Assembly (NCBI GenBank): GCA_038496445.1
Contig: JALMLS010000209.1
Coordinates: 1-43,116 of the forward strand
Direction: 5' to 3'
DNA length: 43,116 bases
Source of the DNA: Trichosphaerium sp. ATCC 40318
Lineage: Eukaryota; Protista; Tubulinea
Of the stretch, positions 3,647 to 43,116 are shown piece by piece (position 1 is the first letter of the stretch; each line of letters begins with the position of its first letter). The position numbers and the translations under genes were made by a program. The notes below the pieces were generated by a model. The model searched no databases. It saw only the letters and a program-made list of their open reading frames with translations, and was not told the DNA's origin.

Positions 3647-3829
3647 TGTAACGATTAGAATTCGTATGGAACTCGGAGAGAACTCATACTGAATCACAAG
3701 AAGAACAATCAATGACAAGTATAAATTATACGAAATTTCCCTTGAATTTCTATCAGTTACCTTTCCCGACTAAGCCTGTAAATATTAATAAATTACAACT
3801 TACAAACGCATCACAACTGTTCTGTTACA
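3647..3829 (+). repeat. 5' LTR (183 bp)
   Basis: TGTAAC...GTTACA, identical by eye to 10278-10460. Confidence 0.97.
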
Positions 3830-3848: not shown

Positions 3849-3962
3849 TTAAAACCTATAGTAAACTATTGAACAAAATTTACGGCATATATCGTTGTAG
3901 GCTCGGTTTAATAAGCCTACCAGAACCGCTACGTAATTTCATCTTTGACCCCTCATTAAGAT

Positions 3963-5033: not shown

Positions 5034-5086
5034 AGGATAGTGCTGATAAGAGCCCTATCAGCGCTTCAATTGAAGAAAATGGGCTC
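5024..5086 (+). promoter_or_regulatory. -1 programmed ribosomal frameshift signal (A AAA AAC plus H-type pseudoknot)
   Basis: The slippery heptamer at 5024-5030 lies just before the gag TAG, and the -1 frame is open into the protease. Stem 1 is 5039-5048/5056-5065. Loop GAGCCC (5050-5055) pairs with GGGCTC (5081-5086). Confidence 0.85.
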
Positions 5087-5336
5087 AAGTCACGTGATGA
5101 CATTTCAAAACACGTGACATCACAAACCGCACCTTCACAGATGTCCGGAATCCCTATGAACGCTATTTCCGTATCAGCAACAACTTTTGAAGAGAACCTA
5201 CCTAAAAACGCATCAGCTTGGCATTGTTACGCCAAACATGGACCTGTACACATCAAATCTTTGTGTGACACCGGTTCACCGGTTAGTTTAATTAACTTTG
5301 ATTTAGTTAAGACGTTAGGTTATTTAAAACACTTAA
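5030..5336 (+). CDS. pol: Pol N-terminal part: linker and first half of the aspartic protease
   Basis: LCDTGSPVSLI active-site motif. It joins in frame to the downstream pol sequence if the insertion and one TTAA are removed. Confidence 0.9.
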
Positions 5337-9683: not shown

Positions 9684-10282
9684 GGAAAAGTTACAAGACT
9701 AAAGAAAACCACAAATTGGCACAACGATGGCTAGGACCTTATGCTATAAAAAAGATTAACCCAGTTTCAAAACTATCATACAAACTAGAAGAAATCAAAG
9801 GAGGTATGAGATTAAAACTACCTAATGCTTGGTATCCCATTCAAAGACTAAGACGACATTACAATTCTACATTGAGAAACACCAAACCTATTTTACAGTC
9901 AGAAGATGAAATTCGCGATGATTCTGATGATTATAAGATGGATGATAAGGTAGAAGACAACAGAGATGAACTACAGAACTTTAAAAAAGAGAGGGAGGAA
10001 ATGGATAAAGACGTCTATCCTGAAAATATGAAGAACTTAAAAGATATAATACAACAAATATACAACTCCCTGGAAAAGAAACAATACAAGTCAATCTCAC
10101 GTTTTAAGAAGACAATTACTGATAACTTAGAAACTTTTTGTAGAACAAGTGATCGACACACTGTTCAAAGGATGGTTAAGAAGACAAGATATCAGAACGG
10201 ATTAAGGATGGTTTTATACGCTATTCTTGATGACTTTACAAATCTCTTTGCAAGAGAATTCATTAAGGAGGGAGGAATGTAA
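9614..10282 (+). CDS. pol: Integrase C-terminal region (GPY/F module plus extension), frameshifted from pol
   Basis: FTVGDEVLL and KLAQRWLGPY motifs. The frame changes in an A-rich tract at ~9590-9613, and the stop codon overlaps the 3' LTR start. Confidence 0.88.
   Translation: MEDNYNQRRTEEIFTVGDEVLLLRKSYKTKENHKLAQRWLGPYAIKKINPVSKLSYKLEEIKGGMRLKLPNAWYPIQRLRRHYNSTLRNTKPILQSEDEIRDDSDDYKMDDKVEDNRDELQNFKKEREEMDKDVYPENMKNLKDIIQQIYNSLEKKQYKSISRFKKTITDNLETFCRTSDRHTVQRMVKKTRYQNGLRMVLYAILDDFTNLFAREFIKEGGM
10265..10277 (+). promoter_or_regulatory. Polypurine tract AAGGAGGGAGGAA
   Basis: Purine run immediately 5' of the 3' LTR. Confidence 0.92.
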
Positions 10283-10460
10283 CGATTAGAATTCGTATGG
10301 AACTCGGAGAGAACTCATACTGAATCACAAGAAGAACAATCAATGACAAGTATAAATTATACGAAATTTCCCTTGAATTTCTATCAGTTACCTTTCCCGA
10401 CTAAGCCTGTAAATATTAATAAATTACAACTTACAAACGCATCACAACTGTTCTGTTACA
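10278..10460 (+). repeat. 3' LTR (183 bp)
   Basis: Identical to the 5' LTR and followed by TSD AGCGA. Confidence 0.97.
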
Positions 10461-12169
10461 AGCGAAACAAGCACGAAACGGTTTTTCAAAATACAGTGTG
10501 AAAACAAAGAAAAACCCTTGGTTGGCAAAACCTATTTTCTTTGTAGTTTGTAGTAATGTAGAACGCTTTGTTTTCGCGGACTATTTTTTAACCCGAAAGG
10601 GAACACAAAGTATTATTATAACTACATTATCAAAACGAGAACCGGCAACGAATTCGTCGACCAGTTTTTACGCCAGGCAGACGCTGTAGTCACTTGTGGT
10701 TTTTTGTGTGATCACATGTTGAAATAGATTTTTTTCTCTTGCGTCTGTTGTTATTTTCTATCTTCCACTGGTTTCGTTTGTAACACTTTAGATTGGCAGG
10801 GTAGGCGATGGCTATTTAAATTGCACTGTTTTTGCGCTAAACAGAACCAACAACACTGGGGCATGAAAACGGCACCAAAGAACTCTTTACGCACCACAAT
10901 GCTACTCTACTCTCCGAAGAACATGTACTACAACAGTTTTTTTCTGCTATTTTGTGTATCTACGACGTAGAAGATTAATAGAGTGCCAACAAGGCGTTGT
11001 ATTGAAATAATTTTAGTGTGCGGTTGTTATTGATCATAAAGAATGCTTCCCTACGTCTCATAGACGTCACCGCTTCGTTCCAATTTGTTTTTGTTGAGGG
11101 TTTGGTAATTTACTGTGGTTACTTTGTAATCAAGCTAACATGCAGTCTGTACATTGCCCTACCACGGCGGATACCCGATATATAGTGTTACTAGTATTGA
11201 GCACTAACAACCATCAGTATTTTGCAACAACTTTTTTTTTGACATGACGTGTGCCTATGATCTTTGTAGCAACCATGAACGCTTCCACCCATTTGTTGTC
11301 TAAACCTTAATGATGTAGTATCCGCAATCCGTGTCATTCAGGTTTGAATAGTTGGATCTAGTTTATATGCTCTCCTCCGTGTACAGCTTCGCTTTGGTAG
11401 CTTGTTTCATTCAATATGAGGCTCCTTGATACGGTAACATATATGTTTAGAAGTCAAAAATTGGTTTATCTTTTTTTTTTTTTTGGGTTTTTTCTTCTTC
11501 GCTTTTTTACTGTGTTTGTAGATGGAGAACTCGCTAAGAAGCATTATGAACATATGCAAAATAAGATAGAGGCTCTTGAGAAACAAAATCAAGAGCTTGC
11601 TAGCAAGGTCAAGAACCAAATGACTGAACAAGAGCTCATGATTAAAAGATTGAAAGAAGAAAATGAACGTCTCCGAGAAAAGACAGTCTGCTTTTTTTTG
11701 TGACGTCTACAAAAACGTTTTCTCGTTCAATGAAAACCAAGTGGAGAAAATATTTTTATTGCAGTTTTATACGCACATATACATGTCGCATTAGTGTGCA
11801 AAGAATCAGGTCAAAAATCGATTTTTCAAGCCAGATATTATGACTTCTTTATGGTTTTTTTGAGCCAAAAACGAGGAATGTTTACAAATCTTTTTCTCAT
11901 TGAAAATACAAAACAGTGTGTATTGACATGTAGATCTGTTGTGGAAAAAATCAGAACTGAACTTGAATGTGTTTGCCATAAATGGTACCTTTCTTATTTT
12001 TTTCTGTATTTTCGCTGTGAAAATTTGTTGTGTCATTGGCAGGATGTTATGGATTTATTTGAGCACACTGACCATTCAAAGATACCGACGGTAATAATAG
12101 TATTTACATGCTGATGTCTCAACCTTTTAGTCGTTATGGTGACCGTTACAGGTCCATCGCTGCAGTATT

Positions 12170-13460
12170 TTATGCAGTTACAATATGTTCCTTTGAACTT
12201 TGTTCATGTTTGCATAGCTCTTTTCTAGTGTTATCAACCTTATTATTTGCTTCTTGTAACTCTAGTTCAATTCCATGTTACATTAACACTCTTGTCTAGG
12301 GATATTTATTTTCCATGAAATCAGCTTACAGTAATGTAAGGTTGGTTTTTGGAATTGTCAGTTTGTTGGATGATGGTTACCTTTTGGTCAGGGATATACT
12401 TTGCAGTACACTACAAAATACACAGTGCTCTCATACCTACTTCTTACACTTAGAGAAGTATAAACCATGATTGTTCATATGATATTTAGGAAAGAATGAA
12501 AAAAACTCATCTTGAGTCTTGTCACTCCTGGCAATACCATAGGTTTGGTTACTATGTAAGTGGTCCCAACAACTCAAGTATAGACATTTAGCAGGAGTTT
12601 ACAATAGTATAAAAAATATGCAGTAAACCTCTGGATGTATATCCTGTAAGTACACAAACAAGTCTTTACTTTGAACTAGCTACTAATTATGAAAGGCACA
12701 AGCACCGACAAGTTAAGAGAACAGCCAATAAAATCAGCCTACTACCAAGTTCATTACAAATTGATAGCTAGGGAAAGACCTCTTGAAGACATGTTGGTAA
12801 GCAATGTCAAAAACCAATTTATGATATTTCTGTTGAGATTTCAAAGTATAGAGCTCTATGCGTTGGTAGCTTCACTTGTATTTCTTTAGAAAAATATTTG
12901 AAAAAGTCAACAATTAATGGCTGCACTGAGAGTAGGCTCCGTACCTGTAACGCCTCTTGCTGACACTGTAAAAGAGTACTTAAACCATCCAGTACGCAGA
13001 AGGCATCACAAAAAGTACTAAAGGAGAATGTAGGACACCATTGACATGCCGTCTGCCATGACACATCCAGTCACACCTCGAGATAGTATAAAAGCAATGG
13101 TAATCTGTTCAGTATGTACTTCACCATGCAATTTTTATTGGCTACCTTGTTTCTGTCTATGTGTCAATAAAGGTATCCTTCACCTATACTATTCTTTATG
13201 TATAAAATGAACATCTTAGGTACATATTATAACTGGAACTATACCAGACGCTATTCAGGGATTTGTAACAACAAGGTGCTTCTCCCTTGTTTCTACAAGG
13301 AATAAATGGCAAAAAAAAGTTTCTCCAAAAGTAATAGTTTGGTGTCAGTGGTAGATGTTACTCTATGTTCCTTAGTTATAAACAGAATAGCTTATCTATG
13401 CGTGCTGTTAAAAGAACTAGTGCTATTTCTTGTTCTCATTTTAGAGACCAAAATGAGTAT
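12170..13460 (-). pseudogene. Degenerate multi-exon gene of unknown function ending in a coiled coil
   Basis: Several GT..AG-bounded segments on the minus strand. The last segment reads GIELELQEANNKVDNTRKELCKHEQSSKEHIVTA*. A partial paralog lies at ~26275-26860. Confidence 0.35.
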
Positions 13461-15399
13461 CAGAACATTAAATTATTTCACCTGCAACTTACTTTTGCAA
13501 ACAATGATCGAGATTTATTATATATCTCGCTTGTTGTAATAAATTCTCTAGCAATAATATTCTTCCACTCGCATGATCTATGACGGAAATAGGGAAGAAC
13601 CATCTTTTGTCCTAAAATGCGGAGTAAGTGCGGTGACTTCTCAAAGACGCTTCAAAATCTAACGTAAAGAAAGTTTCTCGGTGCGTTTTAATAAAACTAC
13701 GGCGAAAGGTCTGTATTTCAAAGTCTTTTTTGGGCAAACCAAATAATACAATCTCATGTATAAAACAAACCTATTCCTTTCAATGATGCGTATTTTTGGG
13801 CGTCACGTTACACTTGATGTTATGTTAAGCCAAAATTGCGTAAAGTTTGACACATGTCAAAATGTCTACATTTTTGTCGATGCCTTTTTGCGGGTATGTA
13901 CATTAGGATGTGAATACCTAGTGTGCTAGGCGGTTTTTTTCAATCCAATTGGAGAGCTGCAGTACCGATAGCACTAATTAGGAATAAAACTACGACTAAA
14001 GTCTGATTTCAAAGAACACTGAGCGAATGTGACAAATGTTAGATTTGATTTCTCTTGTTACTTTTCTAACCATGTTACCAAGTTAGCGCGCAATCGACTA
14101 CAATTCAGAGGAATAAACGTAGTGTTAAAAGTCCACAGACTTTCTAAAAACAAATAGCCTAGACAAGAACAGACGCACACAAAAACTGTTGATCGCTGGG
14201 CACAAGAAGTCTAGCTAGTCGTTGTCTACTAACAGCGAACTTTTTAAAAGCTATAACATCCAAAGTATGGGACGATGCAACTAACGCAATATGTACATAA
14301 TCAGTATAGTGCAATGCAGGAGCGACCAAAGTTAATTTACTTGTACACGCACGGAATGTGTGTTTTCTCTGCTAGAGTACTTGTGCTTTGCAACCCTTAT
14401 CGTCTTGGGGTGGCGAGTTACGCTTTGGCTGATAGCTACTACGATATTTCACACGGCGTAGAAAGATGAATTTACTGAGCAAAGACCTAGTACTAGTAAC
14501 ATGAAAAGCTACTAATTGTTATTGAGAAAGAACTTACAAAACTACCGGTAAAGAAAAAGCATGACTTTGCTTCTTGTGGAGGAAAGAACTACGCTGCAAC
14601 AACATGGAGTACTGGCTGAACTCTGTTTAGCCTTTATTGTAGAGGTATCCCATTCGTAGGTGATAAGGGTTTACTGTTACCCGTGCAGCTCCGTTGTGGT
14701 TTATTCTTTTCGCCATCATACTGACAAAGCACCAGCGAGCGATCCTTTGAAAAAGGCTCTCCCTCAAACCATCTTATAATTTTGTGAGCTGTTTTATTGT
14801 AACGTTGCAAACATGCGCGCATACAAGTGTTGAGGGTGCAATTGTGCTATTGCAAACCATAAAATGGCCGTTTGCCACAAAACTAATCGCCCGTACGTTT
14901 ACGCAATCAAAAAACGCTGTGATGTTCTGTACGAAAGCTTCAATTAGAGCTCTATCACTTGGTAGTTTCAACACAAATAGGCCTCTCCTTGCATAAGCCA
15001 GCAACGGATGTAAAATCTATCGCTCGCGCATAATGCAAGTAGAAAATAGGAGCGGGCTGGCAATTGCCGTGCCAAAGCTCCAAATAGGTCTATCGTTCGT
15101 TTCAGTGTAACAATCGTGGTTTCAAACTGCACTGTTTCATTGCACTGCTTAATAATGAAGGCACATGGTCATAGTGCAAACGTTAGAACTAGTTTTGCAT
15201 TATGTATTTCCTTTGAGTAGATATCGCGTGTACGGAATCAACAACCATAATTCCCAGGCTCGACAAAAGTAGATAAATTACATCAGTAGTACAAACGCTT
15301 GGCGTATGTCAAACAAATTTCAAACTACTTCTAATATGTTCTTTATTGTTTTGCAATTTTCTAAAAGCACACTTTGAGTTAGCAAGCCTTATTACTTTC

Positions 15400-16360
15400 T
15401 ACATCCGTTGTTGCTCCGAAGTACTGAACAATAGAAGTTGCAAAGAACTGGTTTTTCATTCTGGAATTTTTTAAGCTTTATTATTTTCTAATCACTCAGG
15501 ATTTGTCGATTTGTCAGTCTATCAATGAGTATGTCTTTGTTTCCTTGCTTTTTGAGGCAATATACTACAATATCCTTGTAAGAATACTTTTTTTAATGTT
15601 TTCAACCTTTCTGGGGTCACGTGAGCGCGTCCTTCTGTAACTTTGTTGTTTTTTACAAGAATCACATCCATTGTTCAGCCTTAGACTTTTTCCTCAACGT
15701 CTTATCGTCCCAATTGAGGCATTCAGAGTGGAACCATAGATTGTAGTGATCACATAGAATCATCAGGTTGCCTTCAACTTCTTTTCTGTCATGTTGACAG
15801 TCTTCAAAGCATGGTTTTGTTGCTATTCTCCACTTATTTAAAGGTAGATTTTATCCAAGTTTATCAAATAGTTTCTTCTTGTGGGTGCTTGGAAGAGCAA
15901 CAGTAACGACTCCAGTTTTACTTTGTTGAGAATGCACAGCTACCCAATCTACAAATTGATTCTCCATGAATCTCGAATCCAGTACTTATTTTATTGTTCA
16001 AATTTTAGAATCAATTTTTTTGCAGCATACAGGAAAAACTGGCTGCGACCCCAGTGAGGAATGATACCGAGTATGTAAGGCTTTTTACCATATTTTTCGC
16101 AGAATAGAGCTTGTACATAGATCATCAAACCATTTGGATGTGGTTTTCCTTTTATGCACTAAATAACATCATCATAATTTCTTTCGCCACTTCTTTGCTC
16201 ACAAAGCCACATTGTTCCTATAAACTTCATAACTTCCTTAGGTTTGATTGCAGTGTCCCACCTGGTTTTTTTTTCGACCTTGCGAGCACGTGGTCATTTT
16301 TTTTTTTGAATCAAACGCGAATAGATATGTAAGAAGCACACCATCAGTCCGTTTGATTCG
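15400..16360 (-). pseudogene. piggyBac-like transposase remnant (copy A)
   Basis: Paralogous to 28980-30023 with KPVLCNFY and LDSRFM motifs, more decayed. Confidence 0.6.
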
Positions 16361-24560: not shown

Positions 24561-27500
24561 TAATTTGTTACCTTATGGGAGCGTTGATAGAAACGCTTCA
24601 CATTGAAATGACAAAAGTATGGTTTTGAGTGTCGCTAGCGCTATGTAACACTGCGAAAGATAATCACAGCGAAAGGCTTGAGGTTTGTTAGCGTCGTAAA
24701 GGCTTGCTGTCGCTGCGCCTAATTTTTTTCTTTTCGAACCTCTGCGCGTCTAAGTGTAACTACATAGTGAAGGTAGCTAAGACTTCAGTAGTATAGTGTT
24801 AATTGTGAAGCTAGCAAGTGATTTGACGAGATGTCGCTCAGAAATCATCAGAAAAGCTTACAGTGATAGAGCGAAACAAGTGCGAACCGGTTTTTCAAAA
24901 TACAGTTGTGAAAACAAAGAAAAACCCTTGGTTGGCAAAACCTATTTTCTTTGTAGTTTGTAGTAATGCAGAACGCCTTGTTTTAGCGGACTATTTTTTA
25001 CCCGTTCCAAGCAACACACTGTATTATTATAATGACGTTATCATAACGAGAACTGGTAACACAACGAATGTGTTGAGCAGTTTTTACACCAGGCAACGTG
25101 GTAATCGTTGGTTTTTTTTTTGATCACATGTTGAGATTTTTTTTGTTCTGTGTTGTTGTCACTATGTAGAAGTTAACAGAGTGCCAACAAGGTGTTGTAT
25201 TGAAATAATTTGAGTATCGGTTGTTATTGATCATAAAGAATGCTTTTTTCCCTCGTCTCATACACCGCTTCGTTCCAATTTTTTGGCTATGTAATAGATC
25301 AAGCTAACATTCAGTCTTTTCATTGCCCTACCGCGGCGGATACGCGATATATATATTGCGTTACTAGTATTGAGCACTAACATAACAACTATCATCAGTA
25401 TTTTGAACAACTTTTTTTTTTTGACATGACGTGTGCCTATGATCTTTGTAGCAACCATGAACGCTTCCACCCATTCGTTGTCTAAACCTTAATGATGTAG
25501 TATCCGCTGGTCGGTGATGACATGTTCATAGCAATCCGTGTCATTCAGGTTTGAATAGTTGGATCTAGTTTATATGCTCTCCTCCGTGTACAGCTTTACT
25601 TTGGTTATTTGCTTCATTCGCCTAGATAGTTAACCAAAGCGAAAGTCTTGACTAACCCACAGCGCTACGTGCCTTACACTAATGGTAAAAAGAACTATTT
25701 TTTCTGTTTTCTTCCCAGTGTTGCTTGGGCACGTACAATATGAGGCGCCTTGTAATATGCTGATATTATGTTTATAAGTCAAAAATTTGTTCATGCTGCT
25801 TTTTTTTTGACGTCTACAAAAACGTTTTCTCGTTCAATGAAAACCAAGTGGAGAAAATATTTTTATTGCAGTTTTATACGCACATATACATGTCGCATTA
25901 GTGTGCAAAGAATCAGGTCAAAAATCGATTTTTCAAGCCAGATATTATGACTTTTTTATGGTTTTTTTGAGCCAAAAACGAGGAATGTTTACAAATCTTT
26001 TTCTCATTGAAAATACAAAACAGCGTGTATTGATATGTAGATCTGTTGTGGAAAAAATCAGAACTGAACTTGAATGTGTTTGCCATAAATGGTACCTTTC
26101 TTATTTTTTTCTGTATTTTCACTGTGAAAATTGTTGTGTCACTGGCAGGATGTTATGGATTTATTTGAGCACACTGACCATTCAAAGATACCGACGGTAG
26201 TAATAGTATTTACATGCTGATATCTCAACCTTTTAGTCGTTATGGTGACCGTTGCAGGTCCATCGCTGCAGTAATTTATGCAGTTACAATATGTTCCTTT
26301 GAAATTTGTTCATGTTTGCATAGCTCTTCTCTAGTTTTATCAACCTTATTATTTGCTCCTTGTAACTCTAGTTCAATTCCATGTTACACTAGCGCTCTTG
26401 TATAGTCGCCAGGGATATTTATTGTCCATGAAATCAGCTTACAGTAATGTAAGGTTGGTTTTTGGAATTGTCAGTTTGTTGGATGCTGGTTACCTTTTGG
26501 TCAGGGAAACACTTCACAGTACACTACAAAAAGTACACAGTGTGCTCTCATACCTACTTCTTACACTTAGAGAAGTATAAACCATGATATTTAGGAAAGA
26601 ATGAAAAAACACTCATCTTGAGACTTGTCACTCCTGACAAACCTATAGGTTTGGTTACTATGTGAGTGGTTCCCAATCTCAAGTATAGCCAGCTGATAGA
26701 CATTTAGCACAAGTTTACAATAGTATAAAAATATGCAGTAAACCTATGGATGTATATCCTTTAAGTACGCAAACAAGTCTTTTACCTTGAACTAGCTACT
26801 AATTATGAAAGGCACACCCACGACAAGTTAAGAGGACAGCCAATAAAACCAGGCTACCAAAGTCTTCTGAAACAAACCTTTATTCCTTTCATAGACACGT
26901 GAAATTTTCAGGCGTCAAGTTGCACTTGATGTTACGTCAAAATTGCATAAATTTGACACATGTCAAAATGTGTCAACATTTTTGTCGATGCCATTTTGCG
27001 GGTACATTAGGATGTGAATGCCTGGTGTTACGCGTTTTTTTCAATCCAATTGGAGAGCTGCAGTACCGAAAGCACTAATTAGGAATAAAAACAACGACTA
27101 AAGTATGATTTCAAAGAACAATGAGCGCTAGAATGTGACAAATGTTAGATTTGATTTCTCTCGCCACCATTTCTAACCACAATACCAAGTTCATGTGTAA
27201 TCGACTACAATTCAGAGGAATAACCATAGTAGTGTTAAAAGTCCACCGACTTTCTAAAAACCAATACCATAGACAAGAACAGACGCACACAATAACTGTT
27301 GATCGTTGGGCAAAATAAGTCTATCTAGTCGTTGTCTACCAACAGCGAACTTTAAACGCTATAACGACGATCTAACTAACGCAATAGGTACATAACCAGC
27401 AAAGTGCAATGCAACCAAAATTAATTTACTTGTAAACGCACGGAACGTGTTTTCTCTGCTAGAGTGCTTGTGCTTAGCAACTTTATCGTCTTGGCGCGTA

Positions 27501-28979
27501 GTGGAGAGTTACGGTTTGGCTGGTGTTACTATGACATATCACACGGCGTAGAAAGATGAACGTGCACAGTACTGAAGCAAAGAAAGCAGCTAGTACTATG
27601 AAAAGCTATACAAGATTTTTCTCAAAAAACTACCGTTAAAGAAAAAGCAAGACTTTGCTTCTTGTGGAGGAAAGAACTATGCTGCAACAACATAGGAGTA
27701 TTGGCTTGAACTCTGTTTAGCCTTTATTGTAGAGGTATCCCATTCGTAGGTGATAAGGGTTTACTGTTACCTCGTGCAGCTCCGTTGTGGTTTATTCTTT
27801 TCGCCATCATACTGACAAAGCACCAGCGAGCGATCCTTTGAAAAAGGCTCTCCCTCAAACCATCTTATAATTTTGTGAGCTGTTTTATTGTGACGTTGCA
27901 AACATGCGCGCATACAAGTGTTGAGGTTGCAATTGTGCTATTGCAAACCATAAAATGGCCGTTTGCCATAAAACTAATCGCCCTCACGCAAACTGTGTTT
28001 ACGCAATCAAAAAACGCTGTGATGTTCTGTACGAAAGCTTCAATTAGAGCTCTATCATTGTTAGTTTCAACACAAATAGGCGCTCTCCTTGCATAAGCCG
28101 GCAACGGATGTAAAATCTATCGCTCGTGCGTAATGCAAGTAGAAAATGAGAGCCGGCTGGCAATTGTCGTGCGAAAGCTCCAACTACGTCTATTGTTCGT
28201 TTCAGTGTAACAATCCTGGTTTCGAACTGATATGTGACAAAAATACGATGAAGGTACTATCCTAGCGTGTTGGTGTTCTCGTTTTGACCTTCCTTGTTCA
28301 AAAGATGTTACTACCTTGCTTTTGGTTCTCTTTGCGGTGGTTGGTGCAAAGAAGGTTTAAAATACATCCGGACCTGATGACGTAATTATGGATGTTTTCA
28401 TCATACAACAAAGCCCTGTAGATTGCGTAATGCAGTTTTTACGAAATTTATTATTTTTGACACGTGAACAAATGCAACACAAAAATGACTTGACTAGCCC
28501 TGGTTATCGTAAAACTTCGTATTGGGAGTACTCACAGAGGTTAGCAAATCGAACATTTCCTTTGTTGAGAGTAGTAGATATAGCGTGTGCGGAATAATAA
28601 CATCAGTAGCATAAGCGCTAAAAGCTTGGCGTGTCAAACAAATTTCAAACTACTTCTAATATGTGCTTATTGTTTTTGCAATTTTCTAACAGCACACTTT
28701 GCGTTAGCAAGCCTTTTACTTTCTACATCTGTTGCTGCTCCAAAATAATGAACGTGCTATAGTCTCAAACACAGTCTGTTTGGAGAGCATTTCAGTACTT
28801 CTTCTGGTTCATATCTTTAAGTATTTTATCTCATTACAGATATTTCAAAAAAAAATTACAAGTAGTAACATTTATTTCTCAGCGATTGAGCTTACATCAA
28901 CTTCAAATGATCTACAACAGATCCACCGCAAACACTTCTGTAGCTAATAGATAAAGAGGAAAAGCTCAACGCCTTTTTT

Positions 28980-30023
28980 TTTCAAGAATGTAGTCGCATT
29001 GTATGGTGCATATTAATGTCAATTTCAGTAGCCCAGGTGCCGGCACTCATCGCTTGTAATCCGGCCGGCGTGGTGTTTGACAACTCAAATAATAAGCTTA
29101 TCAATAGCTGCAAAGTTGTGATGATAGAAGTTGTGAAGAACTGGTTTGTCATTCCGTGGAGAGCCCAATTTTTACAAGCTGAGCTTTAGTATTTTCGTGA
29201 CAATTTACAGATTTTTTCATAGTCGGAAGTTTGTATTGGTTCACCAGTTTTCCAGCCATATCCAAGTAACCTCCACTCCATAGTCTTACCGTTTTCATTT
29301 CTTACGCATGAATGATACAACTTGACCATGGGTTTGTTGCTATTCTCCACTTATTTTAAAGTAGATTATTTCCAAGTTTTCAAATAGTTTCTTCTTGTGG
29401 GTGCTTGGAAGAGCAGTAGTAACGTCTCCAGTTTTACTTTGTTGAGAACGCCCAGTTGTCCAATCTACAAACTGATCCACCATGAATCTCGAATCCAGTA
29501 CCACATGAGGCGCAAACTTATAACATTGTTCAAATTTTATAATCAATTTTGTTGCAGCATCTACAGGAGAAACTGGTGTGCCGCGACCCCAGTGAGCAAT
29601 GATACCGAGTATGTAAGGCTTTTTACCATGCTTGTCAGAATACAGCATGTACATAGATCATCAAACCCTTTAGATGTGGTTTTCCTTTGAAACACTAAAT
29701 AACATCATCATAATTTCTTTCGCCACTTCTTTGCTCCCAAAGCCACATTGTTCCTATAAACTTCATAACTTCCTTAGGCTTGATTGCAGTGTTCCGCTAT
29801 GTGTTTTTTTCGACCTTGCGCCTTGAACCCTGCCATAAATGTTTGTTGGTTTTTTTTTGTTTGTTCGATCACGTGATTCCAATTTTTTTTGAATCAAACG
29901 CGAATAGATATGTTTCGTGTAAGAATACACATCATCCGTCCTTTTGAATAACGTAAAGAAACTCATGTGTTTTTCAATAAAGCTTAAGCTTGCATACGTC
30001 GCAGTTTCAAATGCATCCGTCAT
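28980..30023 (-). pseudogene. piggyBac-like (DDE_Tnp_1_7) transposase remnant (copy B)
   Basis: Minus-strand motifs in the expected order: FKGKPHLKGLMIY, PHVVLDSRF and KPVLHNFYHHNFAAIDKL, corresponding to KP..G, DN.F and YN..MGGVD..D. Frameshifted. Confidence 0.7.
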
Positions 30024-30547: not shown

Positions 30548-30808
30548 CGGACCCACGTTTTTTCCGAATTTTTCGAAAGAAAAAATTCGAAAAAATAGAA
30601 TTCGTAGAAAGATGCATAGCTAGGGCAGTCCACTAAACTAGAAAGCGCCTGGTTCACTTACGGTCGGGTCTTCCCTGTGCTCGGAACTAGAAACCGACCT
30701 TTGCTCACATATAGTGATCCATTGGTGGGTATAGGCATTCGGTTTTTGTATCGAATTCTATTTTTTCGAATTTTTTCTTTCGAAAAATTCGGAAAAAACG
30801 TGGGTCCG
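30548..30808. mobile_element. 261-bp MITE-like element with perfect 57-bp terminal inverted repeats
   Basis: 30548-30604 is the exact reverse complement of 30752-30808. The element is absent from the paralogous site at ~17818-17850, and no TSD is visible. Confidence 0.85.
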
Positions 30809-31595: not shown

Positions 31596-31830
31596 TATGT
31601 TGAACGCAAACAATGTACACCGAGCCATAACACAAGTAATTCTATGAACCGTCGGCGAAACTTAAATCCATTTTACCGTACAATCAACACTGGTTACAAC
31701 GCTTCATGACGGAGCCACATATCGAAGAATCATCAGAATTAAAAGGTAATAGAAGCGAATCTTCGATCTGCCTCTGTGTTTATTAAAATTCTTCAATAGC
31801 CGAATTGGCGCAGCTTCAATGCAAATACCC
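31596..31830 (+). repeat. Upstream region and first exons shared with 41682-41900 (conserved promoter/5' region of the ankyrin gene family)
   Basis: Diverged direct repeat atgttgaacgcaaacaatgtacaccgagcc...acaacgcttcATG lies in front of both plus-strand ankyrin genes. Confidence 0.8.
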
Positions 31831-34665
31831 CAATATTACAACATGTACCTTCCTTGGTTTAAACACGTTCTCTTTTTCTAAAAACACTGCTCCTTTAGGT
31901 GATGTGCTGAAACAAAAACTACATACTCTTGAGACAGCAAAAGACATTCTATTCTACTCAGGTTTGTATTTACCAACAGTGTAAGTATCAACCCAATTTG
32001 TAGCTCGCAACAATCTCCATGTTGTCGTAATGTTATGCATCCAACCAAGATTGAACATTGAAGCCAAAGAAAACAATGGACGTACTGCTTTAATTGTTGC
32101 AGGTATGATAATGCTTAACCATAACAACATCTGTTACTCACATACACTTTAATTGTTAGCCATTAAAGGACATGATAATGTGATAAAAGTATTACTTGAA
32201 TCAGGAGCCAACATTGAAGCCAAAGAAAACAATGGATGTACTGCTTTAATTGATGCAGGTATATATACTTGATTTGAAGTCACTTAATTCATATTAGCAT
32301 TATTTGGACACAACCCAGTTTTGCAGACTTTATTGAAACAAACTACAGACATATCATTAATAACTATAAAATGGAAACAAGCTTTAATTAAGATACTAAA
32401 ACAGGTGGTTGATGATGATCCTGCATTCATTAATGTGTTTGAAACTCTTTTGACACTGTTTCCAAATGACCAATGCAGTCGTGGACTATGGTTATCATGT
32501 GCACACATGAAAGAGATACCACAGTGGCGACTCAATCTTGCAAAATGGTTGCAATACTTGGTATGGCCTTTTTACCAACAATTAGGCACTAATCACACAA
32601 AGCCAACACGTCCATATTTTAAAGTTGCAATGCAAAAAGGCATTTGCCATTTGATTTGTACATACAGTCCCATGTTTGTACAGTCTTCGGTACAAACACA
32701 CAAAATACAAACGTACATTAACTTATTTTGTTTAATTTAGAGCTTTTGGTTACAGCAAGGAGAGCTGATGGAAGGAATTCTGTCCGACTTATCAGATAAA
32801 ATGTGGAGTAGTACTACACAGCCTGGGTCTGTCATTGAACTGTGTGTAAAAGAAGGATGGTGTACAAATTCTCTTCAAAAAGTACCCAAGCAAGATAGTA
32901 TGTGTTTAGTTGGTATTTCTTTTATTAACATTATACAGCGTTTGCTTGCTATGATTGTTCTCAATATGGATTGTATTTGTGCAGTTATTGTGCTACTCAA
33001 CATAATCAAACCCACGTATTTGTTTTGTATTTATTTTTGCTAACAGTTTGAGTAGAAGCTCTCAAAGCAAATTGGTAGTTTCAAAAAATGTGAATGCAAT
33101 GCTTGCAATCACATACTCACTAATACCTTCTCACCAAATCATGGAGGTAAACATTCCACAACAGGTAAAAAAACACTGTTATTTCAATAGCTGACAATAA
33201 CACTTTTAGGATTAAAAAGTGAGACATCATGGGACTTAAATCCAAGATTACATTATGCCCACACCTGGGATAGATCCAACAACAAGTGAGTAGTTACACT
33301 CGTATTAACTCATGTTTAATTGTTTTTGTCAAACAAAAAAGGGGTACAATTAAAAAAGCAACGCACTATAGAACACTGAATCTTCTTGATTCAAATAAAA
33401 ATGATATTGTAGCCAAGAGAGAACTAGAGTTTCTTCGCGAACAAATGTCAACGATGCACGGCTATGATAAATATGATATTGTAGAAGCTCATCTTGTTTG
33501 CAATGATGTGTTGACTCAAAACTTTGGCACATACAATACCATGCTGAAGCAAAGACACCAGTATGTATACTTATTTAATTGCATTCATAACTGAGCTGTT
33601 TTAATTAGAGACCTACCAGACACATGGAACAAAAAAGATCACAAGCACAATAACCAACAAAAGTTGCCAAACATGCTGTAAATCTCATACAGAACTTGTG
33701 CTTGTATCCATGACGTTTCTGATCAGGTACATTTGCCTACATGTGCATTGTTGACCAAATAATCAGCTACCAGTTGTATTAATGGTTCACGGAACAACTC
33801 GTGAAGCCGCTTGGAGTATTGTAAAAGCTGGATTTGGAGTGATAAGTTCGTTGGATGCTGGATACTATGGACAAGGAATCTACTTTACAGTATGTGCTTT
33901 TTAAAAAGTCACCATCTTACTTGCTTTTTTGAAATAGCACAGCATTAGGTATGCCTGTTCATACGATACATCTGGTACAAATAAAAAGACACTTGTGCTT
34001 AGTTTGGTTACACCTGGAAATGTATATCCTGTACACAACTGCAACCAATCGCACTATTAATTTGTTTATTTACAAAGCATTGATAGGTTACAGAAAACCC
34101 TCAAGATGACTCCAATCTTGTTGGTAAGCCAATTAAAGCTGGATATCAAAGCCACTATGTATTGGTAAACAAGAACGGACAGGTGTTAAACCAAAATAAA
34201 ATAGACACAGCAGTATATGATGAACTGGTTGTAGCTCAAGGTAGTGATTACAATTGATGTACTTGTTGACTAAGTTGTGATTTTAGATGTACAGACTGTT
34301 GCTCGTTACATCATCACAGTTGTGCGAAAACCAAACCAAGAGAAGAAAAGAGCGAAGAAACCGTCTGAGAAAACCAACAAGCAATCATCTGCAACATCAG
34401 AGGGTATTGGTGAATTTGGTTCTGATGACTTGTCTGATTCTGATGATTGTGACAACTTTACCTCTAAGCGGTACAAAATAAGTGTGCATCAATCACTTTC
34501 TTACTTACTTTTGTGCAAAGACAATTATGGGCCTCTAGCTATTTGAATGAGCGCCAAATACAACCAACTGCATATGACAAGCTATTGGAAGAAAACAAAA
34601 GATTACAACAAGTTTACACAAAACTTTTTGAAATTAACACTAGACTAAACCAGCAATTAAAGTAA
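31706..34665 (+). pseudogene. Multi-exon ankyrin - UBR-type zinc finger - PARP/ART - coiled-coil gene, copy A (one exon frameshifted)
   Basis: Spliced by eye from ATG 31706 (MTEPHIEESSELK...): ANK exons, CTNSLQKVPKQDTFACYDC...LCSYCATQHNQTH...CECNAC, HGT (33788), GQGIYFT (33881), YDELVV (34222), stop at 34663-34665. Deletions of 4 and 2 nt relative to copy B in exon 33609-33726 expose TAA at 33679. Confidence 0.8.
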
Positions 34666-36035
34666 CTAAAATTGTCAACACTTGCGCAACACAAACCTCA
34701 GACTGGCTTGTATTTATTACTGTTACAACTGAGAGTCTATATTAACATAAACACTTTTTATCTTGCTTTTTGTTTGCACACATCTAGTGTAGAAACTACA
34801 TTACTATACAATGGTTTTTTTACCAAAATCCTTGTGTTGCCAACCAACATCTTGTTTGATAATTTTGGTTTTCATGTTTGGCAATTGCATCAATACCAAT
34901 GCAGATACTGTAATGTAAAGTAAGATAGTCAAGAGTATCTGTAATAGGTATATTCTTGTATTAATCGTCATGAGTACTTTAAGTGTGATTTGTGCAACTT
35001 TCAGCATTGAATACAAAGTTTGTATTCTTCAACAGTAGCCAATTAAAAGCTCAGTTGTGATCTATATGATTCCAATGTATGTTTACAGAATGTGGTATTG
35101 AATTATCCAGGATATTGATTTCAAGAAAATCACAGATATCAATGGTGAAAATGATCTTGAAGAGGAGGTCGACAAGCGATATCTTGACATCCATCAAAGC
35201 CCTTCAGATCACACTTTGTCTCCAACTTATTCTTTGTGCAAGAGAACACGTGATGACGATTCACGTATTCCTGTAGTTTTTCTCAGTGATTTGAAAGTTA
35301 CAAATTCATTAGTTCTCTCAGCCACTGAGTGTTATGCTATTTCTTCAAAAGTTTAATTCGCCTAGCCTTCAAAGTTTGCAATGTTAAACGTGTGAGCTCT
35401 GTTGAGATTCACATCTGGCCAGTTGGGCTTAGAGCATCTTGACAACTATATTGATAGTTGGAGCAACTTGGATGACTACATTGAACACAAGATCAAGGTG
35501 GGTCATAATGCTGTCTCAAAGAGACACTGATATCTGTACTCTTCCAACTAAAGACAACGCTCTAGGATTTTTAGTAAAACCCAATTGTAAAGCAAGGCAT
35601 ATCATTGACTTAAGCATGCTGAAAGGCGATGCAGTCAACTACTTTGTGGAACCCTTGTTCATGATGGTTGCTTTGAAGGCTGCTATCAGGTTTATGTTTG
35701 AGTTGGTTCAGGATATGCTATGGCAATGGCGGATATAAACAAAGTGTATTGTTGTATTCTGACATCTTACAGCAAAAACTTCTAACTATTTATTCTACTG
35801 TTGGCTAAGTAACTTTCCAATCTCAAAAATTAAACAACTTTTACCAACCCCCTCTTAGCAAATTTCCAAATTCAATAGGCATTGGCAATTGGTTTCATTT
35901 ATTCTTTGATAGATTGTATTCTTAGTCATGGCATAGGAAACATTGTTGGAGTTTATTACTTTGGTATCAATCTCAGCTAGAACATGTTTACGTTATTATT
36001 TGAACTGCTTCTTTTTGCATTTATTAATTTGATGT
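32054..36035 (+). repeat. Left arm of large inverted repeat (palindrome)
   Basis: Reverse complement of ~36325-40323, with mirrored ORFs such as 35439/36622, 34672/37437 and 33286/38773. Confidence 0.95.
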
Positions 36036-36300
36036 TCAAAGCTGTGTTATCTTCCTCTAATTTTAGAATGGCTTGTGTAAGTTCTTCATTTGCTTTCAGC
36101 AGTTGTTGTTCTAAATTGCCATTCAAATAGCTAGAGGCCCATAATTGTCTTTGCACAAAAGTAAGTAAGGAAAGTGATTGATGCACACTTATTTTGTACC
36201 GCTTAGAGTTGGTTTTCTCAGACGGTTTCTTCGCTCTTTTCTTCTCTTGGTTTGGTTTTTGCACAACTGTGATGATGTAACGAGCAACAGTCTGTACATC
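35977..36300 (-). pseudogene. Orphan last two exons of an ANK-PARP paralog with a different C-terminal coiled coil
   Basis: DVQTVARYIITVVQKPNQEKK...TNSKR | intron | YLNGNLEQQLLKANEELTQAILKLEED...NVNMF*. It lacks the acidic segment found in copies A and B. Confidence 0.75.
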
Positions 36301-36324
36301 TAAATCACAACTTAGTCAACAAGT

Positions 36325-39300
36325 ACATCAAATTAATAAATGCAAAAAGAAGCAGTTCAAATAATAACGTAAACATGTTCTAGCTGAGATTGATACCAAG
36401 TAATAAACTCCAACAATGTTTCCTATGCCATGACTAAGAATACAATCTATCAAAGAATAAATGAAACCAATTGCCAATGCCTATTGAATTTGGGAAATTT
36501 GCTAAGAGGGGGTTGGTAAAAGTTGTTTAATTTTTGAGATTGGAAAGTTACTTAGCCAACAGTAGAATAAATAGTTAGAAGTTTTTGCTGTAAGATGTCA
36601 GAATACAACAATACACTTTGTTTATATCCGCCATTGCCATAGCATATCCTGAACCAACTCAAACATAAACCTGATAGCAGCCTTCAAAGCAACCATCATG
36701 AACAAGGGTTCCACAAAGTAGTTGACTGCATCGCCTTTCAGCATGCTTAAGTCAATGATATGCCTTGCTTTACAATTGGGTTTTACTAAAAATCCTAGAG
36801 CGTTGTCTTTAGTTGGAAGAGTACAGATATCAGTGTCTCTTTGAGACAGCATTATGACCCACCTTGATCTTGTGTTCAATGTAGTCATCCAAGTTGCTCC
36901 AACTATCAATATAGTTGTCAAGATGCTCTAAGCCCAACTGGCCAGATGTGAATCTCAACAGAGCTCACACGTTTAACATTGCAAACTTTGAAGGCTAGGC
37001 GAATTAAACTTTTGAAGAAATAGCATAACACTCAGTGGCTGAGAGAACTAATGAATTGTAACTTTCAAATCACTGAGAAAAACTACAGGAATACGGTGAA
37101 TCGTCATCACGTGTTCTCTTGCACAAAGAATAAGTTGGAGACAAAGTGTGATCTGAAGGGCTTTGATGGATGTCAAGATATCGCTTGTCGACCTCCTCTT
37201 CAAGATCATTTTCACCATTGATATCTGTGATTTTCTTGAAATCAATATCCTGGATAATTCAATACCACATTCTGTAAACATACATTGGAATCATATAGAT
37301 CACAACTGAGCTTTTAATTGGCTACTGTTGAAGAATACAAACTTTGTATTCAATGCTGAAAGTTGCACAAATCACACTTAAAGTACTCATGACGATTAAT
37401 ACAAGAATATACCTATTACAGATACTCTTGACTATCTTACTTTACATTACAGTATCTGCATTGGTATTGATGCAATTGCCAAACATGAAAACCAAAATTA
37501 TCAAACAAGATGTTGGTTGGCAACACAAGGATTTTGGTAAAAAAACCATTGTATAGTAATGTAGTTTCTACACTAGATGTGTGCAAACAAAAAGCAAGAT
37601 AAAAAGTGTTTATGTTAATATAGACTCTCAGTTGTAACAGTAATAAATACAAGCCAGTCTGAGGTTTGTGTTGCGCAAGTGTTGACAATTTTAGTTACTT
37701 TAATTGCTGGTTTAGTCTAGTGTTAATTTCAAAAAGTTTTGTGTAAACTTGTTGTAATCTTTTGTTTTCTTCCAATAGCTTGTCATATGCAGTTGGTTGT
37801 ATTTGGCGCTCATTCAAATAGCTAGAGGCCCATAATTGTCTTTGCACAAAAGTAAGTAAGGAAAGTGATTGATGCACACTTATTTTGTACCGCTTAGAGG
37901 TAAAGTTGTCACAATCATCAGAATCAGACAAGTCATCAGAACCAAATTCACCAATACCCTCTGATGTTGCAGATGATTGCTTGTTGGTTTTCTCAGACGG
38001 TTTCTTCGCTCTTTTCTTCTCTTGGTTTGGTTTTCGCACAACTGTGATGATGTAACGAGCAACAGTCTGTACATCTAAAATCACAACTTAGTCAACAAGT
38101 ACATCAATTGTAATCACTACCTTGAGCTACAACCAGTTCATCATATACTGCTGTGTCTATTTTATTTTGGTTTAACACCTGTCCGTTCTTGTTTACCAAT
38201 ACATAGTGGCTTTGATATCCAGCTTTAATTGGCTTACCAACAAGATTGGAGTCATCTTGAGGGTTTTCTGTAACCTATCAATGCTTTGTAAATAAACAAA
38301 TTAATAGTGCGATTGGTTGCAGTTGTGTACAGGATATACATTTCCAGGTGTAACCAAACTAAGCACAAGTGTCTTTTTATTTGTACCAGATGTATCGTAT
38401 GAACAGGCATACCTAATGCTGTGCTATTTCAAAAAAAGCAAGTAAGATGGTGACTTTTTAAAAAGCACATACTGTAAAGTAGATTCCTTGTCCATAGTAT
38501 CCAGCATCCAACGAACTTATCACTCCAAATCCAGCTTTTACAATACTCCAAGCGGCTTCACGAGTTGTTCCGTGAACCATTAATACAACTGGTAGCTGAT
38601 TATTGGGTCAACAATGCACATGTATAAAATGTACCTGATCAGAAACGTCATGGATACAAGCACTGGAGTTCTGTATGAGATTTACAGCATGTTTGGCAAC
38701 TCTATTTTTGTGATTATTGTGCTTGTGATCTTTTTTGTTCCATGTGTCTGGTAGGTCTCTAATTAAAACAGCTCAGTTATGAATGCACTTGTAGTAATAA
38801 TTACAAACATACTGGTGTCTTTGCTTCAGCATGGTATTGTATGTGCCAAAGTTTTGAGTCAACACATCATTGCAAACAAGATGAGCTTCTACAATATCAT
38901 ATTTATCATAGCCGTGCATTGTTGACATTTGTTCGCGAAGAAACTCTAGTTCTCTCTTGGCTACAATATCATTTTTATTTGAATCAAGAAGATTCAGTGT
39001 TCTATAGTGCGTTGCTTTTTCAATTGTACCCCTTTTTTGTTTGACAAAAACAATTAAACATGAGTTAATACGAGTGTAACTACTCACTTGTTGTTGGATC
39101 TATCCCAGGTGTGGGCGTAATGTAATCTTGGATTTAAGTCCCATGATGTCTCACTTTTTAATCCTAAAAGTGTTATTGTCAGCTATTGAAATAACAGTGT
39201 TTTTTTACCTGTTGTGGAATGTTTACCTCCATGATTTGGTGAGAAGGTATTAGTGAGTATGTGATTGCAAGCATTGCATTCACATTTTTTGAAACTACCA

Positions 39301-40323
39301 ATTTGCTTTGAGAGCTTCTACTCAAACTGTTAGCAAAAATAAATACAAAACAAATACGTGGGTTTGATTATGTTGAGTAGCACAATAACTGCACAAATAC
39401 AATCCATATTGAGAACAATCATAGCAAGCAAACGCTGTATAATGTTAATAAAAGAAATACCACTAAACACATACTATCTTGCTTGGGTACTTTTTGAAGA
39501 GAATTTGTACACCATCCTTCTTTTACACACATTTCAACAATAGACCCAGTTTGTGTAGTACTACTCCACATATCATCTGGTAAGTCGGATAGAATTCCTT
39601 CCATCAGCTCTCCTTGCTGTAACCAAAAGCTCTGATATAAAAAAAAACAAGTTAATGTATGCTTGTATTTTGTGTGTTTTGTACCGAAGACTGTACAAAC
39701 ATGGGATTGTATGTACAAATCAAATGGCAAATGCCTTTTTGCATTGCAACTTTAAAATATGAACGTGTTGGCTTTGTGTGATTAGTGCTTAATTGTTTGG
39801 TAAAAGGGACATACCAAGTATTGTAACCATTTTGCAAGATTGAGTCGCCAGTGTGGTGTCTCTTTCATGTGTGCGCATAATAACCATAGTTCACGACTGC
39901 ATCGGTCATTTGGAAACAGTGGCAAAAGAGTTTCAAACACATTAATGAATGCAGGATCATCATCAACCACCTCTTTTAGTATCTTAATTAAACCCTTTTT
40001 CCATTTTACAGTTATTAATGATATGTCTGTAGTTTGTTTCAATAAAGTCTGCAAAACTGGGTTGTGTCCAAATAATGCTAATATGAATTAAGTGACTTCA
40101 AATCAAGTATATATACCTGCATCAATTAAAGCAGTACATCCATTGTTTTCTTTGGCTTCAATGTTGGCTCCTGATTCAAGTAATACTTTTATCACATTAT
40201 CATGTCCATTAATGGCTAACAATTAAAGTGTATGTGAGTAACAGATGTTGTTATGGTTAAGCATTATCATACCTGCAACAATTAAAGCAGTACGTCCATT
40301 ATCTTGTTTGGCTTCAATGTTGG
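36325..40323 (-). repeat. Right arm of large inverted repeat (palindrome)
   Basis: Mirror of 32054-36035. The inner ~2.3 kb is almost identical and the outer part is visibly diverged. Confidence 0.95.
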
Positions 40324-41610
40324 CTCCTGATTCAAGTAATACTTTTATCACATTATCATGTCCATTAATGGCTAACAATTAAAGTTAATGTAACAGATGT
40401 TGTTATGGTTAAGGGGGGACGCTGAGAATGGAATGACCTTAGCCCCACAGGCATCTTCGGGCTTGTAAACCCATCTAAAATCGCGTAAAACGCTGAAAAA
40501 ATAGGATAGCGAACTGCGTAGATTGATTACTTGAGTTCAAAGCCGAAATTTCATTTTTTTTCTCAACTTTTTGACCTTAATTACACAGATTGAAACAACT
40601 TTTAAGCTATTCTTCCACTATTGCACCACTTGGAGACGCATTTTAGGTGGTGTAGAGCAAATTCGTTATTTTTTTTTGCTTTCAAATTGAGACTTCTTAT
40701 TTGAAAGTGTACCCATAGCATGTACTACGTGTGTAGATGCTATGGGTAACATAGTTTTGAACAAATGTGCTTTTAAACAGAAAGATTGAAAAATGCAGTC
40801 GTTTTTTGAAAAAAAAAACTTTTGCAACAAAAAAACATCACAAAAAGGCACACGCTAAAAGTTGGGTTTTTCAAAAGCCCTCATGTCAAAGATATAGGCC
40901 CAAAATTTGAGCCGATTTGAACAATTTCTGCACATCTCAGCGTGCCCCCTTAAGCATTATCATACCTGCAACAATTAAAGCAGTACGTCCATTATCTTCT
41001 TTGGCTTCAATGTTGGCTCCTGATTCAAGTAATACTTTTATCACATTATCATGTCCATTAATGGCTAACAATTAAAGTTAATGTAACAGATGTTGTTATG
41101 GTTAAGCATTATCATACCTGCAACAATTAAAGCAGTACGTCCATTATCTTGTTTGGCTTCAATGTTGGCTCCTGATTCAAGTAATACTTTTATCACATTA
41201 TCATGTCCATTAATGGCTAACAATTAAAGTGTATGTGAGTAACAGATGTTGTTATGGTTAAGCATTATCATACCTGCAACAATTAAAGCAGTACGTCCAT
41301 TATCTTTTTTGGCTTCAATGTTGGCTCCTGATTCAAGTAATACTTTTATCACATTATCATGTCCATTAATGGCTAACAATTAAAGTTAATGAGTAACAGA
41401 TGTTGTTACAGTTAAGCATTATCATACCTGCATCAATTAAAGCAGTACATCCATCATTTTCTTTGGCTTCAATGTTGGCTCCTGATTCAAGTAATACTTT
41501 TATCACATTATCATGTCCTTTAATGGCTAACAATTAAAGTGTATGTGAGTAACAGATGTTGTTATGGTTAAGCATTATCATACCTGCAACAATTAAAGCA
41601 GTACGGCCAT
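37695..41610 (-). CDS. Multi-exon ankyrin - UBR-type zinc finger - PARP/ART - coiled-coil gene, copy B (six tandem ANK exons, 5' end missing)
   Basis: The reading frame stays open after splicing from the ANK array to the stop at 37695, with the H-Y-E triad (E codon 38137-38139). No N-terminal exons or start codon were found beyond ~41610. Confidence 0.75.
40117..41610 (-). repeat. Tandem array of ~152-156-bp units (99-nt ankyrin exon plus intron)
   Basis: Exons at 40117-40215, 40273-40371, 40966-41064, 41118-41216, 41274-41372 and 41428-41526, plus a partial one from 41584. All are phase 1 with near-identical introns. Confidence 0.95.
40413..40949. mobile_element. 537-bp Kolobok-like MITE in an ankyrin-array intron
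   Basis: TTAA TSD at 40409-40412 and 40950-40953, TIRs GGGGGGACGCTGAGA and TCTCAGCGTGCCCCC. Sister introns show the empty TTAA site. Confidence 0.88.
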
Positions 41611-41791
41611 TTATTCTGCTTCAAACGAAACCTTACCAATATTGTGCGACAATATGTATCTGATCCGGGGGAGCCGGGAGCTATGTTGAACGCAAACAAT
41701 GTACACCGAGCCGGAACACAAATAATTCGATGAACCGTCGGCAAAACTTAAATCCTTTTTACCATACAATCAACACTGGTGACAACGCTTC

Positions 41792-43116
41792 ATGGCAGAG
41801 CAGCTGGCGATTGAATGTACGCCGCTAACATTATATTATTAACACTTGGGTTATTAAATATTTCGTCACAGCCGAATTGGTAGAGCTTCAATTAGTTTTC
41901 AGTAACATTACAACAGGTACGTAGCCTATTCCGAGTTAATATCCTTGTTTAATGTTTTACTAGCTGATGAACTAAGGAACAGTATCCGTAATCAAGCGAT
42001 AGCCAATGATATTCTGCTCTATTCAGGTTCGGTGCCTAAATCTTGCTTGTAACCAATAAATATAGTGCTTTGTGGCCTGGCTAGTACTGTGATAATGTGC
42101 ATTTACCAGGAGGTAAACATTGAAGCTTCGTTGTACGACGGACGCACAGTTTTACATGTTGCAGGTACCTCGGATTTGCGCATCACCAAACGCACTGACT
42201 TGAACTATAAAGCCACAACGGGACACTTCAATATAGCTCAAATATTAATCAACTCAGGCGCAAGCATTGAAGCCAGAGATAAAGACGCGTGCACACCTTT
42301 ACATCTTGCGGGTATGTTAGATTAAATAATGACTCCAATTTACGGTTCTTAGCGAATGAAGGACATATTGAAGTAGTTCAAATATTGCTCAATTCAACAG
42401 CGGATTTTGAAGCGACGGATAACAAGGACGGACACCTCTTGTTTGCGCAGGTAATTGTAATCTTGTAACTACTAAACTAATTCGCACTTCGTATCTTAGC
42501 CAATAAAGGACACAAAAAAGTTTCTGAGATGTTATGCCAGGCGATGATAAGTACTAAAAAAGTAGGAAAGGATGGACGTACTACTTTACACAATGCAGGT
42601 TAACCTAAGTTATACAGGGTGTTAAGTGGATTAACTTGATTCCAAGCTCGTAGCGGACAAATTACAATTGTGGAAATGCTACTCAACGCAGGTGTAGATG
42701 TAGATGCTACAGAAAATAATGGATTCACACCCCTACATGATGCAGGTATATTAGTTTACTAATAATAATTATAAAACGTACGCTGACATCCTATACCAGC
42801 GTTTCATGGACACGACAACATTGTACAATTGTTACTGAAAGCAAACGCAAACATACAAGCGTCGAATATCTATGGACACAAACCGATTCATTGCGCAGGT
42901 ATTGTCGTCTTTCAAGTTTTGAGTTTAAGTCTTAAATTAGCTCAAAATGGGCACAGTGAAGTTGTTGAAACATTAATCAAATCAAGTGCGAACATTCACG
43001 CTACAGATAAAGATGAAAACACAGCTTTACATACAGCAGGTATCCTAAACTTCTACATAATGTACTAGTGACTTTAATTCACAAAATTCGGTAGCCATCG
43101 AGGGATACAGTGAAGT
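41792..43116 (+). CDS. Multi-exon ankyrin repeat gene C (one repeat per exon), runs off the window
   Basis: ATG 41792 (MAEQLAIE...) with N-terminal exons homologous to gene A, then seven diverged phase-1 ANK exons (GRTVLHVA, CTPLHLA, FTPLHDA, NTALHTA). Exon 42353-42450 is 98 nt, which is either a 1-nt deletion or a sequencing error. Confidence 0.85.

Follow-up and report, generated by a model that had tools for sequence, protein, structure and literature searches.

The window examined here (the whole stretch of Trichosphaerium sp. DNA that was analysed, 43,116 nt long, with a GC content of about 37% and short introns) carries near its right end a run of almost identical ankyrin exons that leads into a PARP-type domain. 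The question raised by this locus is whether the array belongs to an immune sensor that diversifies its binding surface, as originally predicted. Six tandem 99-nt exons were indeed confirmed on the minus strand between 40117 and 41526, in a gene referred to below as gene B: B1 (41428-41526), B2 (41274-41372), B3 (41118-41216), B4 (40966-41064), B5 (40273-40371) and B6 (40117-40215), the last of the array. All six are in phase 1-1 with canonical borders (TAG before the exon, GTAT after it), and each encodes one ankyrin repeat, the cut point falling after helix 1. The ankyrin assignment is based on a Pfam Ank match for a single 32-aa exon (E=4e-4) and on 348 matches to ankyrin and DARPin structures in the PDB. 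The array has a TRF score of 1190. A search of metagenome contigs with the exact exon pattern returned 0 matches, and an 18-mer query returned chance matches only.

Seven nucleotide columns vary among the six exons, six of them nonsynonymous and one synonymous (AAT/AAC). The amino-acid changes are K/N, E/K/Q, N/D, N/D, R/C and V/D at ankyrin positions 14, 1, 2, 3, 5 and 10, respectively, with one codon being tri-allelic; B1 carries K14, E1, N2, D3, C5 and D10. The claim of six variable codons, all with amino-acid changes, therefore stands, but the codon of position 2 also holds the synonymous change, and only five exons are distinct, since B3 and B5 are identical. Positions 2, 5 and 10 co-vary as a single haplotype. 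The introns had been described as nucleotide-identical, which is wrong. Their lengths are 57, 55, 57, 53, 53 and 57 nt, they differ by a CA>TG change and small indels, and the intron types alternate with a period of two. The intron between B4 and B5 contains a 537-bp non-coding MITE (40413-40949) bounded by terminal inverted repeats of 15 bp; its outermost letters are GG...CC, which is Kolobok-like, and its target duplication is TTAA. A contig of RNA run X1 matches 340 nt of this element with 8 differences, so that other copies exist. No inverted or spare repeat exons were found inside the introns of the array (53-57 nt, one with the MITE).

From B1 to the stop at 37695, 19 exons join into one open frame of 800 codons, and several splice junctions of this model were seen in RNA contigs. 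The array is followed on the same strand by three exons encoding a helical linker without a Pfam family (39475-40077), two exons with a Cys/His-rich motif that is UBR-box-like by eye only (39209-39434), the core of a PARP-type ADP-ribosyltransferase (38121-38595), and two final exons with an acidic/basic stretch and a long, coiled-coil-like C-terminal helix (37695-38074). For both the linker and the Cys/His motif, searches of Pfam (exon by exon) and of the ESM Atlas yielded no named family. The Cys/His motif is found in genes A and B of this window (gene A is described below) but not in the related transcript product P0003, suggesting modular gain or loss.

The fusion of the array to a PARP domain was borne out by the in-frame exon model, by profile searches and by a structure model. 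The array runs in frame into a PARP domain with an intact H-Y-E triad (His at 38574-38572, Tyr at 38481-38479 within a GIYF motif and Glu at 38139-38137). We assigned the triad by PARP1 motifs; the corresponding residues H88, Y119 and E198 are shared by 90-100% of the 31 homologues compared, and B has all three. In its C-terminal part, B shares 88% identity with P0152, a transcript product from MMETSP that served as a stand-in for the gene B product in structure prediction. The P0152 model (pLDDT 84) matched the catalytic domains of PARP10 and tankyrase in Foldseek with E=2e-8. A PDB search with P0152 as a single sequence gave no match, PARPs being found by profile only. When the family profile was used against solved structures, the best matches were the ART domains of PARP12, ZAP and PARP10 (E about 1e-6), with which the B-family domain shares its fold. 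However, it differs from these in the low identity (14-17%), in having no accessory domains in common with them and in retaining the catalytic Glu in B. Mammalian mono-ARTs of the PARP12/ZAP/PARP10 type are not known to carry this residue. The PARP branch of B also has members in Mastigamoeba, Pyxidicula and Copromyxa, where they are positioned behind other domains, and a homologue from MMETSP0405 (taxid 498012) is 55% identical. Length-limited searches of protein databases revealed no full-length ankyrin-PARP from Trichosphaerium. Two loops of the PARP domain, 38152-38189 and 38376-38384, show dense paralog variation in RNA contigs while the remainder is conserved, and are possibly substrate-facing.

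Two relatives in the window indicate what the beginning of such a gene looks like. Gene A (31706-34665, plus strand) has its ATG at 31706, followed by three N-terminal exons, a capping ankyrin exon (32004-32102), one array exon (32160-32258) and a PARP domain; it is the paralog that had been noted as having a single full array exon, and this proved correct. Gene C (41644-43039, plus strand) lies head-to-head with B and exits the window. Its transcription begins near 41765, the point at which run X3 shows a template-switch adaptor, its ATG is at 41792, and its three N-terminal exons are followed by diverged 99-nt ankyrin exons. The promoter, ATG, three short N-terminal exons and capping ankyrin exon of A and C are homologous. 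No promoter, ATG, N-terminal exons or full capping repeat of this A/C type were found for gene B, which as assembled is without a recognizable 5' end. Its first piece is the 3' remnant of a capping-type ankyrin exon (41584-41611, minus strand), which meets DNA from upstream of gene C at a junction with a short CCATT overlap (41606-41611). The first in-frame Met of B is codon 268 counted from B1, located after the array in the linker exons. A search for upstream starts found no ATG path of one or two exons into the half exon; it yielded three direct paths with weak donors and 12 three-exon paths that run antisense through the 5' region of C, and the three-exon paths are contrived. A bacterial promoter scan was at chance level and is irrelevant here.

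We propose that gene B would have arisen with an inverted duplication and that its promoter, ATG and first three-and-a-half exons were probably lost at the microhomology junction. Given this loss, B is most likely a recently silenced copy, and about even confidence is placed in the reading that it is a real tandem expansion which survives as a headless, silent member of a birth-and-death family. The intact 800-codon frame and splice sites weigh against silencing, as they would be expected of a live gene or of one lost very recently. The array should in any case not be counted as a functional receptor, given the junction at its 5' side.

This junction may itself be a chimeric artefact, because the probable source assembly was made from amplified DNA and inverted microhomology junctions are typical of MDA chimeras. 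The published Trichosphaerium genome was assembled with Canu from DNA that had been whole-genome amplified with REPLI-g (PMC10521059), and inverted junctions with short complementarity are the commonest MDA chimera (PMC1855051). B would then be intact in the cell, and the junction at 41606, perhaps together with the fold-back at 36324, would be due to template switching during MDA or to misassembly, an explanation that we regard as rather unlikely. On this explanation, B would work as an ankyrin-PARP and carry at least six repeats, the exact copy number being uncertain. In its favor, B is bordered on either side by an inverted junction showing 5-7 nt of microhomology, the frame of B is intact, and the window does contain indel errors: exon 42353-42450 of gene C is 98 nt long, and all four RNA runs add one base at 42420-42425, an indication that the assembly has an indel error there. 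A contig of run X7, by contrast, is counted for the headless reading: it matches from 41606 rightwards and is preceded by 206 letters of different sequence (this is one low-depth contig from another sample).

The inverted duplication on which the proposed origin of B depends spans 32054-40321, with arms of about 4 kb (32054-36035 and 36325-40321) that are 98% identical. The arms diverge by about 4.5% beside the array and have zero substitutions from 33758 inward, so that the inner 2.3 kb of the palindrome is free of substitutions, a point in favor of a chimera. The 289-bp spacer (36036-36324) contains the two final exons of a further PARP-family gene, which run into the reverse complement of arm A, and the fold-back involves a 7-nt microhomology; it may be a real rearrangement or an MDA chimera. 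The palindrome as a whole was rejected as a pure fold-back artefact in view of the divergence of its arms near the array. This same divergence between A and B, together with the MITE, also argues against the chimeric explanation for B, which is not a simple fold-back copy. Gene A as assembled has a frameshift and a stop at about 33656-33700, which may likewise be an assembly error, since one is indicated at 42420-42425. A cluster of small deletions relative to B and the MMETSP transcript covers 33566-33757 of gene A and could reflect a pseudogene or sequencing error. Upstream of gene A lies a perfect inverted repeat of 57 bp whose arms are separated by 147 nt (30548-30808); it is probably another small TIR element.

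We also considered the available RNA data. The ankyrin-PARP family is expressed and spliced, as contigs of spliced family transcripts were recovered in four runs drawn from three studies and show several paralogous variants at each site. At the B-private alleles 39117, 39538, 39858, 39879 and 39891, however, every covering RNA contig has the non-B letter, and the contigs of run X3 agree with neither gene A nor gene B at 38865 and 38895. The absence of B alleles is weakened by the nature of these data, which are de Bruijn contigs from which rare variants are dropped, and by the runs perhaps representing other strains. It nevertheless counts against the chimeric explanation as well. The prediction of a working immune sensor at this locus is thus unsupported, B having no 5' end as assembled and its five private alleles being missing from the RNA contigs. 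For B to be an intact, expressed sensor whose array is diversified on purpose, by somatic shuffling or in-frame exon skipping, it would presumably have to be transcribed in the opposite direction from the promoter of C. The symmetric exons would permit in-frame skipping, the gene lies head-to-head beside an active promoter, the family is transcribed, and the few contrived paths to an ATG exist. Nonetheless, without homologous first exons, a strong start or B-specific RNA, and with none of the inverted or orphan intronic repeat exons known from Ectocarpus, we consider it very unlikely.

The array itself is informative about how repeats are gained and lost. Gene C maintains one repeat per phase-1 exon even though its repeats have diverged, and one repeat per symmetric phase-1 exon is shown to be the basic gene structure of the family; gain or loss of a whole unit therefore keeps the frame. 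The B array is a real tandem expansion of such an exon-plus-intron unit within a multigene ankyrin-PARP family. As assembled, B has six array exons and A has one, although the paralogs are 95-98% identical. The array exon of A consists of the 5' part of B1 joined to the 3' part of B6, internal B units share their 3' haplotype with the capping exon, and all four gametes are present for sites 14 and 2c. The units of B are thereby shown to be mosaics of a few haplotypes on an invariant scaffold. From the sequences we infer that entire exon-plus-intron units have been exchanged by unequal crossover and conversion, and the original suggestion of either process is supported by the six versus one units, the recombinant-like exon of A and the four-gamete pair. 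Ordinary unequal crossover and gene conversion would suffice to gain, lose and homogenize these units. The locus can be viewed as a snapshot of the mechanism: sister copies that have six units and one unit, an exon that looks recombinant, and a headless copy.

Whether selection has favored change on the binding face is a separate matter. Position 14 was counted as randomized following the DARPin design. Together with positions 2, 3, 5, 10, 13 and 33 of a published library (PMC4308713) it forms a set of seven, into which five of the six variable codons fall (P=5e-4 for clustering). The variation had been placed on the binding surface, and it does cluster there, but position 1 is framework in the published library designs (PMC4308713). 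Outside the hairpin/helix-1 set, 0 of 54 nonsynonymous sites in scaffold codons vary, which supports the scaffold being under constraint. With events counted by hand, the density of nonsynonymous changes on the face exceeded that of synonymous and intron changes (7/20 versus 5/67, P=0.005); an alternative event count gave 5/17 versus 5/67 (P=0.025), and the strict six-position face set gave P=0.054. These comparisons are suggestive of diversifying selection on the face codons of the array, as had been claimed, and a tri-allelic codon would be in keeping with it. However, over the whole array there is no significant excess of nonsynonymous over synonymous change (P=0.68), and the same sites vary in ordinary ankyrins, positions 2, 3, 5, 10 and 13 having the highest entropy among natural repeats (PMC4308713).

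It is possible, at somewhat less than even probability, that diversifying selection is not involved, and that purifying selection on the scaffold combined with a few conversion tracts left variation at sites that are merely tolerant. Only about 5-7 events are involved, three of them linked in one haplotype, and dN/dS between A and B is already 0.82 in the three non-repeat linker exons after the array. Similarly, transcript L001 (1-784) encodes about seven more-diverged ankyrin repeats upstream of the same PARP, which vary at positions 2, 3, 5, 10 and 13-17, with a pN/pS of 0.93-1.35 on the face and 0.57 in the scaffold. Such an explanation holds whether or not B has kept its 5' end and has against it mainly the face comparisons above.

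Homogenized arrays with a variable face are known from fungal NLRs and from brown-algal candidates, and the B array would appear to work like them while being a member of neither. Fungal NLRs with ankyrin repeats of high internal conservation include Pa_2_8180 and Pa_3_8560 of Podospora (Dyrka et al. 2014, PMC4986451). As in these, where repeats exceed 85% identity along at least 100 aa, the B repeats are on average 91% identical (minimum 81%) along 198 aa, repeat number varies, and the variable sites lie on the inner helix and beta-hairpin; the difference of six versus one is between paralogs only, compared with polymorphism among fungal isolates. Unlike in the fungal proteins, the B repeats are N-terminal, each has its own exon, the effector is a PARP, and positive selection on the face codons is suggested at most. 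Neither a NACHT nor an NB-ARC domain was found in the gene B model or Pfam scans, and membership of B among the NLRs was rejected on the lack of a NOD domain. The ROCO-LRR and NB-ARC-TPR genes of Ectocarpus also devote one exon to each repeat (Zambounis et al. 2012, PMC3341825). These resemble the family described here in the single repeat per symmetric exon, the tandem clusters, the many pseudogenes and the birth-and-death evolution. In contrast, B has ankyrin rather than LRR or TPR repeats and no ROC-COR or NB-ARC domain, and its tiny introns are duplicated with the exon and hold no inverted or inactive repeat exons.

According to Perina et al. 2014 (PMC4245714), ankyrin repeats and PARP were joined on several occasions, amoebae being among the lineages concerned. 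Like tankyrases and other ankyrin-PARPs, B has an N-terminal ankyrin arm and a C-terminal H-Y-E PARP domain, but its repeats are homogenized and its catalytic domain comes from the protist PARP branch that is found behind FG-GAP, EGF and SH3 domains. No SAM domain was matched in the B exons tested or in relatives P0003 and P0004, and B was accordingly rejected as a tankyrase. By analogy, in intact members of the family the ankyrin arm may bind a target protein and the PARP domain may ADP-ribosylate the bound target, as in tankyrase. We found no paper on such arrays joined to PARP in amoebae, Trichosphaerium included.

Exchange with giant viruses has left extensive traces in the Trichosphaerium genome (PMC10521059). 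An antiviral or antibacterial role is plausible on the basis of the birth-and-death pattern and the analogy to the fungal and brown-algal candidates, and we tentatively suggest, at somewhat less than even odds, that intact members act in conflict with viruses or intracellular bacteria. A broader proposal seems improbable, though less so than an intact sensor at B: that Trichosphaerium has a large family of 'bind-and-tag' ankyrin-PARPs whose one-exon repeats undergo reshuffling and positive selection directed at viruses or bacteria, with the array belonging either to an intact member that was misjoined in assembly or to a silent copy that donates repeat variants to expressed paralogs. Were this so, a unicellular amoeba would possess a recognition system that diversifies and that has an ADP-ribosyltransferase as its effector. 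Should the family prove to be under diversifying selection, it would be a testable candidate for how a free-living amoeba recognizes non-self. The B array illustrates the reshuffling of repeats in a fast-evolving gene family rather than a proven immune sensor.

Finally, the remainder of the window contains further traces of the family and of mobile elements. PARP-family remnants occur at 12.2-12.8 kb and 26.4-26.9 kb and, together with the frameshift of gene A and the fragment in the palindrome spacer, count in favor of a silenced copy in a birth-and-death family. These decayed fragments (12200-12830 and 26425-26865) lie inside a segmental duplication spaced by about 14 kb (11688-16284 versus 25796-29820), and part of them is 93% identical to transcript L001. 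A Gypsy-like LTR retrotransposon with a gag-like ORF and a 1079-codon pol-like ORF occupies 3960-10279. It is flanked by direct repeats of about 185 bp (3641-3829 and 10272-10460), and decayed relatives of it are present at about 2.6-3.4 kb and 23-25 kb.
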